A stretch of DNA of 64,000 bases from positions 495,267 to 559,266 of the forward strand of contig NW_027192191.1 in assembly GCF_041956535.1 (NCBI RefSeq), in the 5' to 3' direction. The notes beneath the pieces are model-generated. The model was not told the origin of the DNA. It did not search any database and was given only the letters and a program-made list of their open reading frames with translations. This DNA is from Calcarisporiella thermophila CBS 279.70 (Eukaryota > Fungi > Calcarisporiellomycota). This document shows positions 24,601-42,095 of the stretch, piece after piece (the first letter of the stretch is position 1; the number at the start of each line of letters is the position of its first letter). The position numbers and the translations under genes were made by a program.

Positions 24601-27600
24601 TCATTTCTTATTTTCAAGCGACAGTAAGGTTTCGCTAGTGCGGTTGCTAGCTGAGCGAAGAGCCAAACGCTGCCACCACCATTTGGAATTCACAACGGAG
24701 GAAAGTGCCTTTTTTGTTTGTACAGTGCCTGGATGCTCAGATCCTAACAGTTTCTCTCGGATCTTTAGTGCTCGCTCAAATAACGGTTTGGCTTTTTCGG
24801 GATTCTTCTGATCAGAATATAGCATCGCCAAGTTGTTTAGTGATGTTGCGGTATTTAGGTGCTCAGATCCTAGAGTTGCCTCACATATCGCTAACGCTCG
24901 CTCGTACAATGGCTCTGCTTCGGAATATTTCCCCTGTTTATAGTAGAGCACTGCTAAGTCATTTAGAGATGATACTGTGTCAGGGTGCTCAAGGCCTAGC
25001 ATTTTTTCCCTAATTGCTAACGACCTTTGGAAAAGTGGTTCAGCCTTGTAATAGTTGCCTCGTTCATAGTAGTATGCGGCGAGATCATTTAAAGTGATCG
25101 CTGTGTATGGATGCTCATGCCCCAGTATCTTTTCACGGATCACAAGACACCTCGTATGAAGATATTCTACTTCATCATACATATCTTGTTGAGAATAAAG
25201 TAGGGCAAGCTCGTTTAGAATCAATGCTGTAACTGGATGCTCATTTCCCATTACTTTCTCACGAATTGCAAGTGCTTGTAGATAAAGCGGTCGGGCTTCG
25301 TCATATTTTCCCTGTAGACGATAAAGGGTGGCTAAATTAGTTAAGGTTGAAGCGGTGGAAGGGTGATCGTAACCCAGAGATTTTCTTTGGATGTTTAATG
25401 CTTGTTTATAGTATTGCTTAGCTATTTCATAATTTCCTTTATAGCGATATAATAGTGCCAAATTGTTGAGTGAGGAGGCTGTAGCAGGATGAGTCATTCC
25501 CAACTGCTTTTACCGAATTTGTAGTGCTCTTTGGTGCAATGGCTCCACTTTATCATGGATGCCTTTGCTGTGATAGCACTTGGCAAGATCATTTAGAGAT
25601 ATCGCTGTAGCTGAATGGTCGCGTCCAAGAGTTTTTTCTCTAATTTCCAACACCTTTTGAAATCGGCCCTCTGCCTTAGAGTATATACCCTGATAATAAT
25701 TGAGCAGAGCCAAATCATTAAGCGATTTGGCAGTGGATGGATGGTCAATCCCAAATATACCCTCTCGAATCGAAAGAGCACGTTGAAATAGCATAAGAGC
25801 CGTATTAAACTGGCCGTGGAATCTATGGTAGGAAGCCAAGTTGTTCAGGCTAGCTGCTACGGCAGGGTGTCCCTGTCCCAGAGATTTCTCCCGAATTTGA
25901 AGCGCCTCTTGGTAAAAAAGTAACACGCCATCATAATTGCCACGGCTCACGTTAAACGTAGCCAACTTATCTAGTGACATAGCAAAGTCAGGGTGTTCTG
26001 AGCCAAGCAAATTCTTTCTGATTTCCAATGATTGTTGGAGTAGCGGCTCTGCTCTGTCAAAGATGGCGCGCTCAAAGTATACTACGGCAAGGCCACATAG
26101 TGTAAATGCTGTCTCAGGGTGCATATAACCAAATATTTTCTCTCGGATTTTTAGCGCCTTATGATACAGCAATTCGGAATTATCATATTTACTCAATTTA
26201 CAATAAAGTAAGGCAAGATTATCAAGTGATTTCGCAGTATATGGATGATCTGGCCCAAAAGATTTTTCTCGTATCGCTATAGCTTTTCTTAGCAATGATT
26301 CAGATTTGTTATACTTTCCCAAAATATAAAAGAGTATGCCCATATCATTCAGTGTTCTCGCCGTTGCTGGATGCTCATGTCCTAAATATTTTTTTCGAAT
26401 TGCCAACTCACGTTCATAGAATTGTTCAGCCTTTTGGTACTTGCCACGGATTTGGTAAAGCAGAGCTAGGTCATTAAGTGATCTTGCAACATCCGTGTGT
26501 TCAGATCCCATGACTTTCTCTTGAATTCTCAGGGCACGCAAATAGAGCGACTTCGCTTCATTAAACTTCCCAAGGGTACTATAGAGTGCGCCCAAATTAT
26601 TAATGGAAGTGGCGGTGTCCAAGTGATCTTCACCCAGCAATTTTTCGCGGATTGCTAATGCCCGTTGAAACAAGTTTAGTGCCTTATCGTACTGACCGCA
26701 GGACTTATAATGCATAGCCATATAATTTAAGGAAGCTGCGGTATCTGGGTATTCTGGGCCTTGTGTTTTCTTACAGATATCTAGTGCACGTTGATAAAGT
26801 AGTTCAACTTTTTCATATTTTGCACAGGTGTTGTAGAGTGCTGCTAAATTATTGAGAGATGTTGCAATATCCGGATGCTCAGGTTCCAGTGTTTTCTCTT
26901 GTATTTCGAGTGCTTATCGATAGAGTTGTTCTGCCATATCATATTTGCTCTGACAGTGATAGAGAACAGTCAAATAATTAAAGGATAATGCCGTTTACGG
27001 GTGTTGAATTCCAAACAAGTTCTTCCGAATAGTTAGCGCCTCTCTGTGCAGGATTTCCGCTTCAGAGTAATTGCATTGGTATTGATAGAGAAGTGCCAGG
27101 TCATTCAGCGATTTTGCTGTTGCTGAATGTTGTATTCCTAACTTCTCTCTACACATTGTTAAGGGCCGGTGAAAGTATCGTTCTGCTGCACTATAATTGT
27201 ATTGTTCAAAAAACACCCTGGCCAAACCGCTCAAATACTTGGCAGTATCTGGATGGTCAGGACCCTGAGCATTTTCACTTATTCCCAGTGCTCTTTGGTA
27301 CAACGGCTCTGCCGTAGCATACTTGCCTTGTGAGGAATAGAACCAGATTATTGATCGAGGTCGCAGTATCAGGGCTGTCTGAGCCATAAATTGCTTCCGA
27401 AATCTTTAAGGAATACTGTGCAAGAAGCTCCGTTCCTGGATATATTCGGTTGCGAATTATATAAGGAATTATTCTGGACAACATGGATTCCAGGTCCTCT
27501 GATTGCTTGTGAATCGCTAATGCTGAGACAAAATGACGAAAGTGTGGAAGGTAGGTTTTCATAATCTCTCTGGTGCGAACAGCATATTCATCGTCATATT

Positions 27601-29008
27601 CTGTTTCACGATTTAGTGCATCAGCAATTCTATCGGTCCAGCGGTACTTCTTCTCTTCACTCATTGCATTGTATACAACCTTATGAACAAGGCGTGGTAT
27701 TGAAACTACATTAGTTGGAAAGCTTTCCTCGTTATCTTCGTTTTCAGAATAAGTTAGTGTCACAAACAAATACGAATTCAATTTGGCAATAGCGGATTTG
27801 ACAGCTCTTAGGGGCCCTTCACTTATCAAATCATTTAGTGGGGAGGGGTGTAAAGTGAGATTTAATCCAAGCACAGAATATTGTTTTTCAAATAGGCACG
27901 TAGGAATAGAGTTAGCTTGCAGAAATACACATATTTCAAGGATTTGGACAGTTGCCGGATCTTGAACGCGGATGCGTTCAAAAGATATATTCCATACGGT
28001 AGCAAGAGTATGTTCATATACATCATCTGCATTGTAAAACGAAAACAAGATACCGCGATGTTTTTGCAATGCGGCAAGGTAATCCAGGAAAGAAAACCCG
28101 GAATTGCTTATAAATGCTCGTGCAAGCACGATTGCAAGTGGCATGTAATCGAGCTCATTGACAATTTTGCAGGCATTACGAAACCTTGTTTCGTTTCGAT
28201 TAATCGAATTTATAGGATCTGGGTGGAACAAGAGAGAAAGTGCCTCCTCTTCATTTAGTTTCTCTATCCGAATGATATTTGCTCTTATCAGAGGTATAGG
28301 TTCACGAGTGGTCAGTAGAATATCACCCCCATAACGTGGTAGACAATTAAAGATATTTTTTAGAGTAGTTTCGTCCACATTATCTAATAGGAGCAGCCAA
28401 TTCGATCTTGCTTCGAGTGAAGAGCGGACATAAAAGATTGCCTTTTCTTCCGCACCGTTTTCCTTCGCAACGGCCTCATCGTATCCAAGATTAATGGCCA
28501 GGTTCCGAAATTCATCAACTGTTGTGGCCCAGTTTTCTGCACTGAGCCAAAAAATGTAGCCATATTTTTGGCGATTAGCATAGCAATATCGTAACATTAT
28601 CTGAGTCTTCCCGATACCACCAAGTCCGAAGAGCGCCACAACTTTACATTCGCCAAAAGAGGTTTTTGTATTGAGAGCAATTGTTATTTGCCTAAATATG
28701 CTAGGACGGTCTATAAAGCTCTTGTTCTGAGAAGGAACTCCAAAGAAAGGATCATGAACTTTCAAATTGAGATCAGGAAGCGAAAAACCTTTGGGTGGAC
28801 TAGTAGGCGGACTAGTAGAAGGGCTGGAAATAGGACTAGTAGCTAATAGTATTAGAAACTAATTAAGTGTAATTGCCCGCAATCATTCAATTGTGCGAAA
28901 AACCATACCAATATAAATAGCAGAATCGTGTATATGGGTATTTCAAGGTATCACTATTCCACCTGTTTCAGCATGAACTCCATGGGTTGAGAATGATTGT
29001 GCACTCAT
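24601..29008 (-). pseudogene. NLR1: fungal NLR (short N-terminal motif + NB-ARC + about 21 TPRs), disrupted
   Basis: P-loop GLGGIGKT, Walker B LLLLDNVD, ILLTTR and YMPLAI, followed by 42-aa repeats (HPxTAxSLNNLAxLYxxQGKYxEAExLYxRALxIREKxLG). In-frame stops at 28943-28945, 26995-26997, 26914-26916 and 25510-25512, plus a frameshift near 27340. Intron at 28843-28908. Confidence 0.88.
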
Positions 29009-29931: not shown

Positions 29932-31916
29932 CTAGTCGCAACTTTTCACCAATTCCAAGATTGTAGTTTTTAGCCATTGCCGGAGACGTCTAGCATGCTT
30001 CCATTGACAAACTGGCTTGTTTTGCACAATCCGAGACGTAACTGCTAAATAGTGAATTGAACTTCGTCGCGTCAGCTGATCTGGGTGGTGCTTGGCGACA
30101 TATTTATGCATGCGACAGGATGCTTGCGTCGCACTTATCGGTAGAGTATGGCACCAGTCATGACGTCGGGCAGTTTCTTCAAGAAGGAGGGTGATCCAGG
30201 AGGCTGCTCTGGAACATTCATTTAATGCGAGAGAACGTAGTGCTTTCATTTTAGGAGTATCCATGCGATTAGGAGGAGGAGGCTTCATTAGAGATCTGTC
30301 AGGTTCAAGAAAACGATACCATATCTAGGAGCGGAGAGGATGATTGAAAGTGAATGCGATTCATCATATGAGGGAGGAAATGTCTCTTGGTAAATGTGAG
30401 GAATTAACTTACTTGGCCCCATGTACTCCAGAAATGCGGTGGATAAGCGAGATCCACCCATGTCATTTCAGCTAGCCGCGCCTTGAAAAATTTCGTATCT
30501 TCACCAAATACCGGCAACTCTATATCCAGCGAACGAATGTATGGACGCAGATCTTCAGAGATGCATAATAATGTCTGTAAAACTGCTTCATCCGATGTAT
30601 CCCAGTCTATTTCCGGTAATTTCTTGAGGCAAGTAAGCAATTCCGCTTCCTTGATTACATAGTCCTGGATGCATCACGTTCAATTTAAAATATAAATTTA
30701 AAGGGCGTGAATGTATTTGATACAAATTCAATGCTTACCAAGCAGTACCCTATAGCCTGACCTTCTCCTGGAAGACACTTAGGTCGTACTACTTTAGATG
30801 CCTGTGGAAAGAGCAACGTCTGCGTTTTCCTCGAATAAACAGCAAGCCCACTATCATGAGTATAAAGAGCCCACCTGAAATCGTGATTGTAAAGGATTAG
30901 ATTTATAGGATGTAATCCGACATGATCGTTTGATCTTACCAAATACGGCGTTTTGTCTCTGCTCTTATAGGATCGGGTTCGTTCAAATCTTCGATGTATA
31001 TCCCCAGTAGCCTTGCCATTGCAATTGCATGCCCTAACTGAACATAAAATTCGTCTGGCCGTGAATTTAATAGATGGTACATCCCAAGATTGAAGGATGC
31101 GACCACAAGTTGTTCAGAAGGCTCATCAAATACTTCCTGTAAATGTCGCTGAGCCTCTAAGTATGCAGAGTTAGCTAGTCCTGGTAGCAAGTCGGCATAG
31201 GGTGGATCCTTATGACACTGGTATATATGGAGGGCAGCCCATGCAACAGCCGAAAATAGGAACGCAGGCTCCAGTTCCTTAGCAAAGAAGAGTTCCATTA
31301 ACTCATCGCGATTAGCAGGCTGGAGGAAGAAGAAGCACGGCGAGAGATATGTGGTAAAGAGTTGGTGCAGCAAAGGGTGGTGTGCTACTGAGGCGTTGGT
31401 GGGCAGCTTGTCTTTGTCAAAGATAACTGCGTTATCCGTGGGCTCTTCAATAAGTAGCAGACGACGGCTCACTGGGCCTTTTATGGATATGTGAACACTT
31501 ATTTTTGGATGATCCTTTGGAGTGAATGAAGTAAGGGTAGCGTAGTCAGAGCCGAAGTTCTGGACCATTAGTAGGTGGAGGTCAGTGATGTTACGAAGGT
31601 AGACTCCATACCATAACCCATTCCCCACAACTGTTTCTCCATCCTCCGAGTCCGAGAGCGTGGATATTGAGGAGAAGGAGGACCTGGTGGATGATGAGCG
31701 AGATACCAGGGCAAGTTCTGTACTCACGTCATCTTCGCTGTCTTCGCCCTCTTCAGAATCGAGTGAAGGTGACGCTTTAGGTCGGTCGTTTCCTTGTTGT
31801 ATTTGACGTAAGTATTCGTCTACTTGTCCAGTAACTTTCTCTACCTCTGTTGTGAGTTCGTCAAAATTTTTGACCAGCGGGTTCAACGCTTCGTAACCCT
31901 CCTCTGAACTTTTCAT
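29932..31916 (-). CDS. Fungal-specific transcription factor middle-homology-domain protein with no visible Zn2Cys6 cluster; multi-exon
   Basis: HAIAMARLLGIY...EPDPIRAETKRRIW|WALYTHDSG is typical of the Fungal_trans/MHR domain. ORFs 30936-31916, 30685-30942, 30404-30640 and 29932-30288 are separated by GT-AG introns. Confidence 0.7.
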
Positions 31917-37602: not shown

Positions 37603-38508
37603 TCACCTTCTCCTCCACCTCCACCACCTACACCACCAGTAATTAGATTGTGATATTGAGGCTAGTGCATCGAGGGCATTTGATGCCATGGGGTGGTTGG
37701 CTCCCAGAGCATTATCTCGGATCACTCGTGTTTTATAGTAGAGTTTTCTTGTCTTGCCAGCATTTCGTTGTTGTTTCTGTAGTTCGCAAAGACATTGCCC
37801 AGCACATATATCAGGCTCAACGTTTAATTTAGCTAATATGCTTAGATATTCAAGTAAATTTGGTTGTTCGCACCCTACACACTTATTCTGAATTGCCATG
37901 GCCCCTAGAAAAATATCCACCGCCCTCCAATAGTCATCTCCCTCTCCAATAATCTCTCCCTGTTCTTTTAGATATATCGGCGACTTTGAATAATCAAACC
38001 CCAGGTATTTTTCAATGAGTTCTAGCCCCTTCCGGTACAGCTGTCCTGCTTCGTTCCTTTTACCTTGTTTCGAGTAGAGTCCAGCAATTCGATCCAGTAA
38101 ATACAATATATACAAGTGATCACTCCCTGACAATTTCTCCTGTATGATCATTGCTTTTTTATACATCTTTTCCGCTTCAATATACTTTCCTTGCCTAGCG
38201 TAAAATTTTGCCAATTGGTCTAAAGAATAAAGGGTATTCGGGTGATCATGGCCAAATGCATTCGCCTGGATTTCCATTGCCCTCAGCAATAACGGCTCGG
38301 CTTTGTCATAGCTACCTCGTTCGATATAAAATTCGGCTAAATAGTAAAAAAATTCTACAGTATCCGGGTGCTCATATCCTACCGCCTTCTCTTGAGACTC
38401 GAGTATTCCTCTATATAGGCTTTCTGCTTTGTCATAGTCGCCTTGAAGCATATAGAATCTGGCCAACTTTTCCGGGGAGCAGATAATGATTGGATAAACA
38501 GATACCAT
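37603..38508 (-). CDS. Stand-alone TPR protein related to the NLR repeat domain (no NB-ARC)
   Basis: Open ORF of 42-aa TPRs (GYEHPDTVEFFYYLAEFYIERGSYDKAEPLLLRAMEIQ) that degenerate toward the C-terminus and end NYWWCRWWRWRRR. Confidence 0.7.
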   Translation of the reverse strand: MVSVYPIIICSPEKLARFYMLQGDYDKAESLYRGILESQEKAVGYEHPDTVEFFYYLAEFYIERGSYDKAEPLLLRAMEIQANAFGHDHPNTLYSLDQLAKFYARQGKYIEAEKMYKKAMIIQEKLSGSDHLYILYLLDRIAGLYSKQGKRNEAGQLYRKGLELIEKYLGFDYSKSPIYLKEQGEIIGEGDDYWRAVDIFLGAMAIQNKCVGCEQPNLLEYLSILAKLNVEPDICAGQCLCELQKQQRNAGKTRKLYYKTRVIRDNALGANHPMASNALDALASISQSNYWWCRWWRWRRR

Positions 38509-39783
38509 CAATTCCTCCTTATTCCCCAATAAAAATACAGTCAATCAGTAAACAACAGCTTTTCAGCCTCAAATTGATAATTAGTGCACACAGCAAATAG
38601 CCTTATGTTATAATCCGCTGAAGACTAGAGAGAGCGATAAGGAGATTTAGAGCCTCTACCAAGTGAAGGTTATATAGATATGGATAGAGATATTCGAGTA
38701 ATTTTAAGGTTAAACACAATGAGGTTATTGTTTCGACCTTAAAAAAGCGGAGCTAAAGTATTTTGTATAACGAGATGTAACCTAAGCAAGAGACGAAACT
38801 CTGATGAACTCTTCACCCCTTTAAATATAATTTAATATCATCAGTTAATTCCAAACACTGATGATCAGAGGAGCTATTTTGATTCTTTTCGTAAGAAGCT
38901 TGGTTCTATTTTATTGAGTTTGATCTAACTCGAAGCAAATTAAAAAGCGAAATGATATTTCTATCAGAGATAGAGTGCTCAAATAGATTAATTCACGTTC
39001 TGCAAGAAGTTGCTCTATAAGATTGTACCAAGCCTCAATCCAGCATACGGAATAGTCTGAAGTTTATACTATATACTGCGAGTACTATATCTAAACAGAT
39101 TTCAGTTTTTTTGGATAGTCCTTTCGGTTCATTGGAAAATTTCGTGCTCCGTTTGAAGGGGGATCCTTGTAGCTCAAGCATCAAACTGTTAAAAAAATTA
39201 ACGCAACGCCAGAGGTATTTTTTTTCTATTTGCTCTACGTATATGATAAAATTATTAACTTTACAGAGTGAAAAGGAGGAGGAGGGAAGCCATTTTTTTG
39301 GTCTGGTGACTTGAGAATTTAAAATATGCTTATATCAAAATTCAAAAGTAAATGATAGAGTCACAGCGAGAGCAAATTGTAGGATTGATGAGATAGACGC
39401 CACTAATCAACTGAGCAATTTACTACCGCTTATTCTGCCATTGGCTCTAATTAATTTTTCTCGAGCGCAAAAGTTATATTCGGCTTAGAAGATAACATTA
39501 ATCAATATTCATATTGGCAAGCTTATTTATCACTGAATTATTATTAAATGTTAAATAACTTGAAAATGATGTTAATCGCACACTAGGTCTATACCAATTG
39601 GTTATTATATATTGATTAAATATATATGATATTGCCAATTGACTTTTTCATCTCTTTATATTTGAAAGGGAGCTGAGAAATGGAAAGATGAGTTAAAGTA
39701 TTTTTCTTATACTCGTTGCTTCTCTCAGAAATCCATCAGATAAAGAGACACTGTACATGAGCACCTTAATGTATTGTTACATT

Positions 39784-42095
39784 TTATTTATTGGAAGGAT
39801 AGAGTACGATTCTTCTCCACCAAGTAGAATCATATTCGTATGAAATAGCCTGGCGAGTCCGGAATGTTTCAGAATGCGAGCGCCCCAGCACACTCACTTG
39901 TATCACAAGCACGCGTTCATAAAGCATATCAGCTTCGTCATATTTTCCTTGGAAGCGGTTCGCTTTCGCTAAATTAGTCAAAGAAGCCACCGTATCAATG
40001 TGGTCGGACCCCAAAATTTTCTCTCGGATTTCAAGAGCTATCTTGAACAATGTTTCTGCAGTCCTGTAGTGACCTCGGATGAAATAGACGACTGCCAAGT
40101 TATCCACCGACACGGCGGTTCTCAAGTGCTCGCGACCAAGCGTTTTCTCTAGAATATCCACTCCTCGCTCTAAAAGAGGAATTGCCTTATCATACTCCCC
40201 CTCGGAACAATAGAATACCGCGAGATTATTCAAAGGAGCAACCTTATCCAGCTGTGTTTGACCCAGGTGCCTCCCTATAATTGTTAGCGACCGTTTGAAT
40301 AGCGCCTCGACTTTATTACTTCTACCCGTCTGGCTATAAATAATGGCTGTACAATTCAGTAGGATTGCTATATTTGGGTGGTTATGTCCTAGCGAAACTT
40401 CCTGACTAGCAAGCAATCGCTGAATGATCGGCTCTGCCTTGTAATAGTATCTTTGCTCGAGATATACAATGGCCAAATTGATCAGAGAAATTGAAGTATT
40501 CGGATGCTCCGCCCCATATAGCAAATCTGAGATATACAAGGTGAGGAGTGCAAGATGTTCCAAGCCAAAATAGAATCCATGGCTTATCTGATAGGAAACT
40601 GTGTGTATAAGAAGGCTGACCAATTGTTTAGAAATAATCGGTGCTTGGCTTAGAGTCTCGAGCACAGTGATGTATTGGTGAATATGGGGGAGATAATTTT
40701 TCATCATCGCTTGAAGATGGCCGGCACTGGAGAAGGAAACTTCATTATTGAGTGCCTCAGCTATATTCCATGCCACCCGTAGCCTATTCTCATGTTTCAT
40801 TAGCTCAAACATGGCCTTCTGAATGGCCCTAGGTACTGTGATTGTCTTTATTCGAGTGCCCCTCTCTTTCTCGCTTTCTTCCCCGATAGAACCGATGAAA
40901 ACGACAGAGAATAGCGACAAAGAAAAAGCAGCTGATTCAATAAGTCTTGGCATCAACCCAGCTTCTACATTTTGTAATAAGGAGGTTTCATGAAATATAT
41001 CGAATTCCAGAGCAGAATGTTGTTTTTCGAAGAGTCGTAGCGGAATTGCATCGGGTTTTAGAAAAACAGAAGTTTCGAGGATGGGCAAGGTCAAAGGATT
41101 AAGTGTCCTAAGTCTCTCCAGTGAAATCCTTAGCGTCTTTGCAACTATACGCTCATATCTAATAGGCCTATCGCCAGCTTGACAGAAGAGAGGAGGTTCT
41201 GGGCTATCTCTGATTTTGTTGAGGTATTGTTGAAATGAATACACGATGCTTTTATTAATATGTGCTCGTGCAAGTGCGATCGCTAAGGGTATTCGGTCGA
41301 GTTCATCAACAATTTCACGAGCGACGTTCATTATTGCAATATTGTTTCTGATTAGCGAAGGTTGAAGCAGGAGTTCAATGGCCTCATATTCTTCCATCTT
41401 ATCCACGCGAATAGTGCTTGCCTCTTCTGGAGAATTGTCATCGCGAGTGGTCACAATGATATTCCCACCACAAGATGGCAATAGTTCGAACAATTTCTTG
41501 CTCGTGATAGTATCGAGATCGTCCAAAAGAAGAAGCCATTTCCTCCTTTCATTGAGCCAGGAGAAAACCCAACGGATCTTGTCCTCGGAAAATTCCAAAC
41601 TGTTGCAGCCAAGCTTGTGTGCTAGCCTATTGAAACCATCAAGGGCAGATGTCCAACTGCCAATACTTAGCCAAAATATATATTTGTATTGATGGCGATT
41701 TCGATGACAGTAGTGGAGCGTCAGTTGGGTTTTGCCCATTCCGCCGTGCCCACTTAGTACTAGGGTCCTGCTTCTACCCGGAAGTAGTTTCCTCTCAAAT
41801 GTCTCTTCCATTTGTCTCATAAGAATGGGTCGCTCGACGTAATCTTGGCTCAGCTGGAAAGCACCGTATGAATAATTAAATATTTTAGGGGCAGATTCCG
41901 ACTTTACTAGAAAATCACAACTAGAGAAGGATTCTGTAAGACGTTTACTATGAAATTAGTTGAAACCAATCTAATTCCTAAGAATGGCCACCTACCATGA
42001 TCCACGATGAAGTCACTTGAGGTTGTATTTTCTGGATTTGCCACCACGTTGTCAGCAGGGCTAGTCTCTTGAGTGAGAACTGTTTGTGAAGCCAT
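39784..42095 (-). CDS. NLR2: intact fungal NLR (short N-terminal exon + NB-ARC + about 5-6 TPRs)
   Basis: Exon 1 (41996-42095) and intron 41907-41995 splice in frame to the 678-aa ORF. P-loop GHGGMGKT, LLLLDDLD, IIVTTR, RIPLAI, then TPRs. Ends STWWRRIVLYPSNK. Confidence 0.9.

Follow-up and report, generated by a model that had tools for sequence, protein, structure and literature searches.

A putative amyloid signalling motif shared by NLR receptors and caspase-like proteases in the early-diverging fungus Calcarisporiella thermophila

Introduction

Can a first exon of 33 codons, at the start of a broken NLR gene, be a remnant of the receptor half of an amyloid signalling pathway, and if so which protein carries the other half? 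The question is raised by a locus in a 64,000-nucleotide stretch of the Calcarisporiella thermophila genome, referred to here as the window. A preliminary description of this DNA had read the exon as encoding a HET-s/NWD2-like motif, interrupted by a TGA possibly derived from GGA, on an NLR devoid of an effector domain.

NLR amyloid signalling in fungi has been described for Ascomycota and Agaricomycetes, with effectors of the HeLo, hydrolase and PNP types. The broadest fungal survey covers 19 effector families, PF00656 not being one of them, and the word caspase is absent from its main text. A review contrasts fungi, in which caspase-like domains form part of the receptor protein, with mammals, in which the caspase is separate. 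In bacteria, BASS motifs have been reported on CHAT proteases. In the literature accessible without subscription we found no paper that describes a fungal NLR signalling to a protease through an amyloid, and none on such signalling in Mucoromycota-type fungi.

Results

The window gene is a pseudogene whose first exon encodes only the motif peptide

Exon 1 of the NLR gene occupies positions 28909-29008 on the minus strand, as do all parts of this gene, and its 100 nt comprise 33 codons and one base. Its translation matches the earlier reading exactly, including the in-frame TGA at 28945-28943. The motif core of 19 residues (28937-28993; positions 3-21 in the numbering of the HET-s-related amyloid motif family, HRAM) is rich in Gly, Asn, Val and Ile and is beta-arch-like. 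A predicted 66-nt phase-1 intron (28843-28908, GTATGG...TAG), whose position is shared with the paralogs and with three foreign orthologs, would join the exon in frame to exon 2, which opens with a Ser/Pro-rich linker (28760-28842). The linker is followed by an NB-ARC domain (28109-28654; Pfam PF00931, E 1e-10; P-loop at 28627-28604) and a long TPR sensor array of 42-aa repeats (24601-27405, final stop at 24601-24603). In database searches, each exon of a spliced gene, and each segment flanking a stop, served as a separate query. The window gene contains no effector domain and has no space for one, in agreement with the preliminary description. An upstream effector exon was considered and rejected: no candidate ORF was seen between 29008 and the upstream gene, and the paralogs share the start Met. 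NCBI model P0046 uses the same exon-2 acceptor but fuses the upstream gene on instead of exon 1. That gene (30936-31916, minus strand, with downstream exons) is of the fungal transcription-factor type (PF04082), and its fusion with the NB-ARC exon of the pseudogene is probably an annotation artefact.

The reading of this copy as a pseudogene is confirmed: besides the TGA in exon 1, the TPR array has a frameshift near 27340-27325 and three stops (26995-26997, 26914-26916 and 25510-25512), which brings the breaks in this assembly to five. No receptor is made from it. Gly stands at the TGA codon in 10 of 11 ungapped paralogs, encoded by GGA in seven, and the Pro codon that precedes it is absent from all 11. 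Since the paralogs have Gly at this position and none has that Pro, both changes look like decay of the window copy. With itself left out of the matrix, the window peptide (T5, P18 and F3 in HRAM numbering) scores 24.5 bits, a value reached by none of 3,000 shuffles.

The motif is retained in a family of NLR paralogs

The NB-ARC region of the window copy has 36 matches in the genome. A homologous exon 1 is carried by 12 paralogs and by one more found later, making about 14 receptors. In the 12 paralogs it is 75-103 nt long with a phase-1 intron at the same position, and the NCBI models of four include it. The peptides align to the consensus Q-S-S-x-x-x-G-x-V-H-A-x-x-G-x5-G-N and score 16-41 bits when each is left out of the matrix in turn (shuffle p <=0.0013 except for one gapped member). 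The paralogs are divergent, their NB-ARC regions being 29-53% identical to that of the window copy, and their sensor repeats are of the TPR or ankyrin type. Many are broken, several being pseudogenes or showing degeneration of exon 1; in at least four (L003, L005, L007 and L021), exon 2 has an open frame of over 1,000 codons. Across the collected peptides the G-N pair and the hydrophobic pattern are retained, as the preliminary description anticipated of intact paralogs.

A second NB-ARC-TPR paralog lies within the window (39784-42095, minus strand). It has an exon 1 of 100 nt (42095-41996), a phase-1 intron and an exon 2 open for 715 codons, and its motif is degenerate, with two prolines (score -6.3, p 0.61). 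Likewise, NLR L009 has kept the first exon and lost the motif. After the second window NLR comes a separate TPR piece of 313 codons (37603-38544, minus strand), and a Trp/Arg-rich tail terminates this piece, the second NLR and the pseudogene alike.

Two caspase-like proteases and a patatin carry copies of the motif

A profile built solely from NLR exons was run against the whole C. thermophila genome and gave three non-NLR matches. The best of these genome-wide (E 4e-7) is exon 1 of a patatin gene (L044, G000:C16:694923-696360), whose product stands alone and keeps both the GxSxG and the DGG motif. Here the shared peptide has the first exon to itself and so sits N-terminally on an effector. 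Another patatin piece, a fragment, was noted at C10:749112, 14 kb from NLR L004. The other two matches (E 0.28 and 0.64) fall within the C-terminal 45 residues encoded by two Peptidase_C14 genes that lack introns, both on contig C1. Because these E-values on their own are not significant genome-wide without a positional prior, shuffle and ranking controls were run. The two caspase tails take the top two places among 512 ORF tails, and again among 247 protein tails. Ungapped cores in the same register (caspase 1, NNYGSITASNGGYVNTGNF; caspase 2, ARTRNAHATNGGVVISGNF; patatin, YTHGNIHAKDGAFVNSGIM) score 29.8, 23.9 and 29.1 bits, respectively, and none of 20,000 composition-preserving shuffles scored as high. 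The window peptide is nearest to the caspase 2 tail, with 8 of 19 residues identical. In the reverse direction, a caspase-tail profile did not return the NLR exons from the same genome; scored directly, the exons give weak positive values. Adding the three effector copies to the profile yielded one more copy, immediately upstream of another NB-ARC remnant (p 0.0014), and no further effector in the genome.

Both caspases match PF00656 (E 4e-16 and 5e-12) and have an intact His-Cys dyad, H89/C140 in caspase 1 (P0001). AlphaFold predicts a caspase/metacaspase fold in which residues 287-351 are disordered, with a short hairpin of low confidence at 311-320, and the nearest Foldseek neighbours of the model are metacaspases and MALT1; the caspase fold and dyad that characterise Peptidase C14 are both present. 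Two residues before the catalytic Cys, P0001 (residues 138-140) has Asn instead of the usual Asp, invariantly so in 14 aligned fungal proteins, and substrate specificity may differ from that of metacaspases. A third caspase paralog (L056) has an internal stop and lacks the motif; a methylaspartate ammonia-lyase gene adjoins it (L056:2583-3626, plus strand). Head-to-head with caspase 2 is a hydrophobic orphan of 599 codons lacking any Pfam match (L051:4172-5968, minus strand), possibly a substrate or partner. Gasdermin, sought in the genome as a substrate with PF04598, gave no match to this profile, which divergent fungal gasdermins could escape, and no other substrate was found.

The preliminary description had expected an effector with the same motif, ideally duplicated, and of the HeLo/HELL type. 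An effector-side motif does exist, C-terminal in two caspase-like proteases and N-terminal in a patatin; duplication does not hold, each protein having one copy, and nor does the HeLo/HELL identity, as the single HeLo gene is without the motif and HELL has no match. This HeLo-domain gene (L047, G000:C38:7175-7831) runs into a long unannotated region. The genes are dispersed: the window gene is 241 and 377 kb from the caspases, the closest motif-bearing NLR remnant is 30 kb from one, and in the NLR that lies 9.5 kb from caspase 1, exon 1 does not match the motif (score -6.6). No adjacent NLR-effector pair sharing the motif was found in the C. thermophila genome.

The motif is HRAM-like

We compared the peptides with the positional definition of HRAM (PMC4518210). 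Gly19 is present in 10 of 11 paralogs and in all three effectors, and N/D20 in nine paralogs; the window copy has its TGA at the Gly. The hydrophobic positions 8, 10 and 16 are occupied accordingly in 11/11, 10/11 and 11/11 paralogs. Agreement is looser at positions 5 and 18 (hydrophobic in 6/11 and 9/11, Ala counted; the effectors have S/T at 18) and at position 3 (N/Q/H in 5/11), and the R/K of position 15 is found in none of the 11 paralogs and none of the three effectors. In HRAM systems a HeLo/HELL protein ends in the motif, mostly in two copies, and NLR and effector genes are adjacent; neither arrangement was found here. The earlier assignment to the HET-s family in the strict sense fails on these points, namely R/K15, a tandem r1/r2 and an adjacent motif-sharing pair. 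By sequence, the motif is HRAM-like, not a strict HRAM.

The Pfam models for HET-s, sigma and PP/RHIM matched none of 13 peptides, a weak test given that only about 25% of HRAMs match PF11558. The PP core NxGxQxGxN is absent on inspection of the peptides, and motif searches of Pfam, PDB and the ESM Atlas returned nothing. In amyloid signalling motifs generally, N, G, V and I (also Q) are over-represented, and K, P and L under-represented. The present motif is enriched in N (3.1-fold), G (3.5-fold), V (2.1-fold) and I (1.7-fold) and depleted in K (0.2-fold), P (0.1-fold) and L (0.1-fold), the exception being Q (0.5-fold), which is not enriched. It also has the general layout of NLR amyloid motifs, with 20-30 residues at the N-terminus of an effector-less NLR and the same motif on a separate effector-type protein. 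The central claim of the preliminary description, that an early-diverging fungus has a family of NLRs with an amyloid-signalling-type motif and no effector domain, is thus upheld at the level of sequence by the paralogs and the matching effector-side copies.

Relatives of the caspase and the NLRs occur beyond the species

The closest caspase homologs come from Jimgerdemannia flammicorona, Endogone sp. and further assemblies. Most of 24 fungal-clade caspases have an acidic or Pro-rich linker followed by a tail of 30-40 residues rich in N, G and aromatics. Scored with the NLR motif, the C. thermophila tails come out highest, in line with co-evolution, and the foreign tails differ from its NLR motif. 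A further profile, made of foreign caspase tails only, was used to rank 1,827 open segments from six foreign NLR loci. Ranks 1 and 2 went to segments that directly precede the NB-ARC exon, in L064 and L082 (about 6e-4 by position). These two loci and L067 have a hidden first exon of 100-115 nt with a phase-1 intron (shuffle p <0.0005 for L064, 0.003 for L082 and 0.006 for L067). No motif exon was found at two Jimgerdemannia NLR orthologs (L063 and L078), so matching of NLR and caspase within one species is seen for C. thermophila alone. No NLR neighbours the caspase on five Jimgerdemannia/Endogone contigs (L058, L059, L062, L077 and L079). One close NLR ortholog (L066:2-900) has a longer unannotated N-terminal region where a motif exon would sit, and the Jimgerdemannia caspase ortholog P0106 adjoins a GVIN1-like very large GTPase gene (L077:1-7476, minus strand).

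In a quick, unrooted IQ-TREE phylogeny that left out fungal metacaspase outgroups, the 24 fungal-clade caspases cluster together (SH-aLRT 100), joined by a single long-branch intruder, and the surrounding proteins are prokaryotic where named. This topology fits acquisition of the family by transfer from prokaryotes. At two prokaryotic metagenome loci, a caspase of this C14 family adjoins a P-loop/TPR NLR (L071:9980-13537 and L073:6367-11461), and a motif of 40-50 residues is common to the caspase and the N-terminal end of the NLR (the alignments score 81 and 148, where the best shuffles reach 55 and 57). It is by adjacent pairs of this kind that amyloid signalling motifs are defined, although the motif sequences here differ from the fungal one. 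The L073 caspase has several G-rich repeats behind its protease domain. A shared motif suspected in bacterial locus L060 failed (p 0.55), and a GTDB scan gave one uninformative locus.

Discussion

Here we have described the anatomy of an NLR gene family, a motif shared between these receptors and two proteases with intact His-Cys dyads, its placement at the receptor N-terminus and in a disordered protease tail, and conservation beyond the species. We consider it likely that the window peptide is what decay has left of an amyloid signalling motif of the receptor side, and that intact paralogs template the caspase tails by means of an amyloid fold. On the model of NWD2/HET-S (PMC9815663), a ligand would be sensed by the TPR or ankyrin repeats of an intact paralog, causing the NB-ARC domain to oligomerise. 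The N-terminal motifs clustered in this way would nucleate a beta-arch amyloid, and the fold would be templated onto the disordered C-terminal tail of the stand-alone C14 caspase-like protease, for which contig C1 has two intact genes, and perhaps onto the patatin N-terminus as well. Crowded protease domains would be activated through forced proximity, and cleavage of substrates would lead to defensive death of the cell compartment. The amyloid fold, templating, activation, substrate cleavage and cell death we infer by analogy with that system.

The same peptide might instead couple NLR and effector through a stoichiometric beta-strand or hairpin contact that does not propagate itself. The single copy on each effector and the low-confidence AlphaFold hairpin at 311-320 would suit such a contact, and the evidence comes from sequence. 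Against this, the length, composition, G-N arc, terminal site after a disordered linker and homotypic sharing fit known amyloid motifs, and the prokaryotic pairs of the same caspase family resemble BASS pairs; we regard a non-amyloid contact as unlikely. Slightly less probable again is that the motif is amyloid and serves NLR self-assembly, or mainly the patatin or an effector not yet found, the caspase tails forming a parallel channel that these NLRs do not drive. Such an arrangement would be in keeping with the rank of the patatin exon as best non-NLR match, with the lack of linkage between NLR and caspase genes and with the dissimilarity of foreign caspase tails to the C. thermophila NLR motif, but the caspase tails of the same species score inside the range of the NLR paralogs themselves, and the iterated search yields no other effector. 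Finally, that exon 1 is a vestige or a low-complexity coincidence with no signalling role is very unlikely, for although several paralogs are decayed and composition alone can make G/N-rich sequences match, composition-preserving shuffles never attain the observed scores and the motif persists in paralogs with divergent NB-ARC regions and in the first exons of foreign NLRs, which largely refutes this reading.

Templating of caspase tails by NLR motifs, the reading we prefer, can be extended to a wider proposal, to which we give an even chance: that Calcarisporiella and the Endogonales have an inflammasome-like pathway in which many NLRs signal by amyloid templating to a separate caspase-like protease (and a patatin), the protease family coming from prokaryotes that already paired it with NLRs through shared motifs. 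If true, this would extend amyloid signalling to an early-diverging fungal lineage, add a stand-alone caspase as executioner and an effector with an N-terminal motif, and provide a traceable link from prokaryotes to fungi. The peptides are short enough for direct testing in established Podospora or yeast reporter assays.

Among known systems, NWD2/HET-S of Podospora anserina and the HRAM family (PMC4518210, PMC9815663) likewise have an effector-less NLR with one N-terminal motif of about 20 residues, and the C. thermophila motif shares hydrophobic positions 8, 10 and 16 and G19-N20. The C. thermophila effector differs in being a C14 caspase-like protease or patatin in place of a HeLo/HELL protein and in having one motif copy in place of r1 and r2; R/K15 is missing, the genes are unlinked, the NLR combines NB-ARC with TPR or ankyrin repeats, and the lineage lies outside Dikarya. 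The Agaricomycete NLR05/08/22/29/44 motifs (PMC9815663), compared by description, are similar in the many NLR copies and few, unlinked effector copies per genome, the extreme N-terminal position and the terminal G[DN]; they pair with MLKL/HeLo-like proteins, whereas the C. thermophila partners are enzymes. Bacterial BASS motifs with a CHAT effector (10.1101/2020.01.06.895854; PMC7889193) are likewise common to an NLR N-terminus and a caspase-fold protease, and prokaryotic relatives of the C. thermophila C14 family form adjacent motif-sharing pairs of this sort (L071 and L073). The fungal system differs from BASS in its protease (Peptidase_C14, PF00656, vs CHAT, PF12770), its eukaryotic host, the placement of the motif on its own exon and the motif sequence. 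Fungal CHAT- and patatin-NLRs (PLP-1 and the CHAT-gasdermin clusters; PMC10197012, PMC12881547) also place a caspase-fold protease or patatin executioner under NLR control, but there the enzyme is fused to the receptor, whereas in C. thermophila the proteins are separate and no gasdermin was detected. In the mammalian inflammasome an NLR controls a separate caspase, coupled to it through death-fold domains and not a beta-arch motif. From these sequence comparisons, the C. thermophila system probably works in the manner of HRAM and BASS signalling, as a variant of NLR amyloid signalling with a caspase as its executioner.
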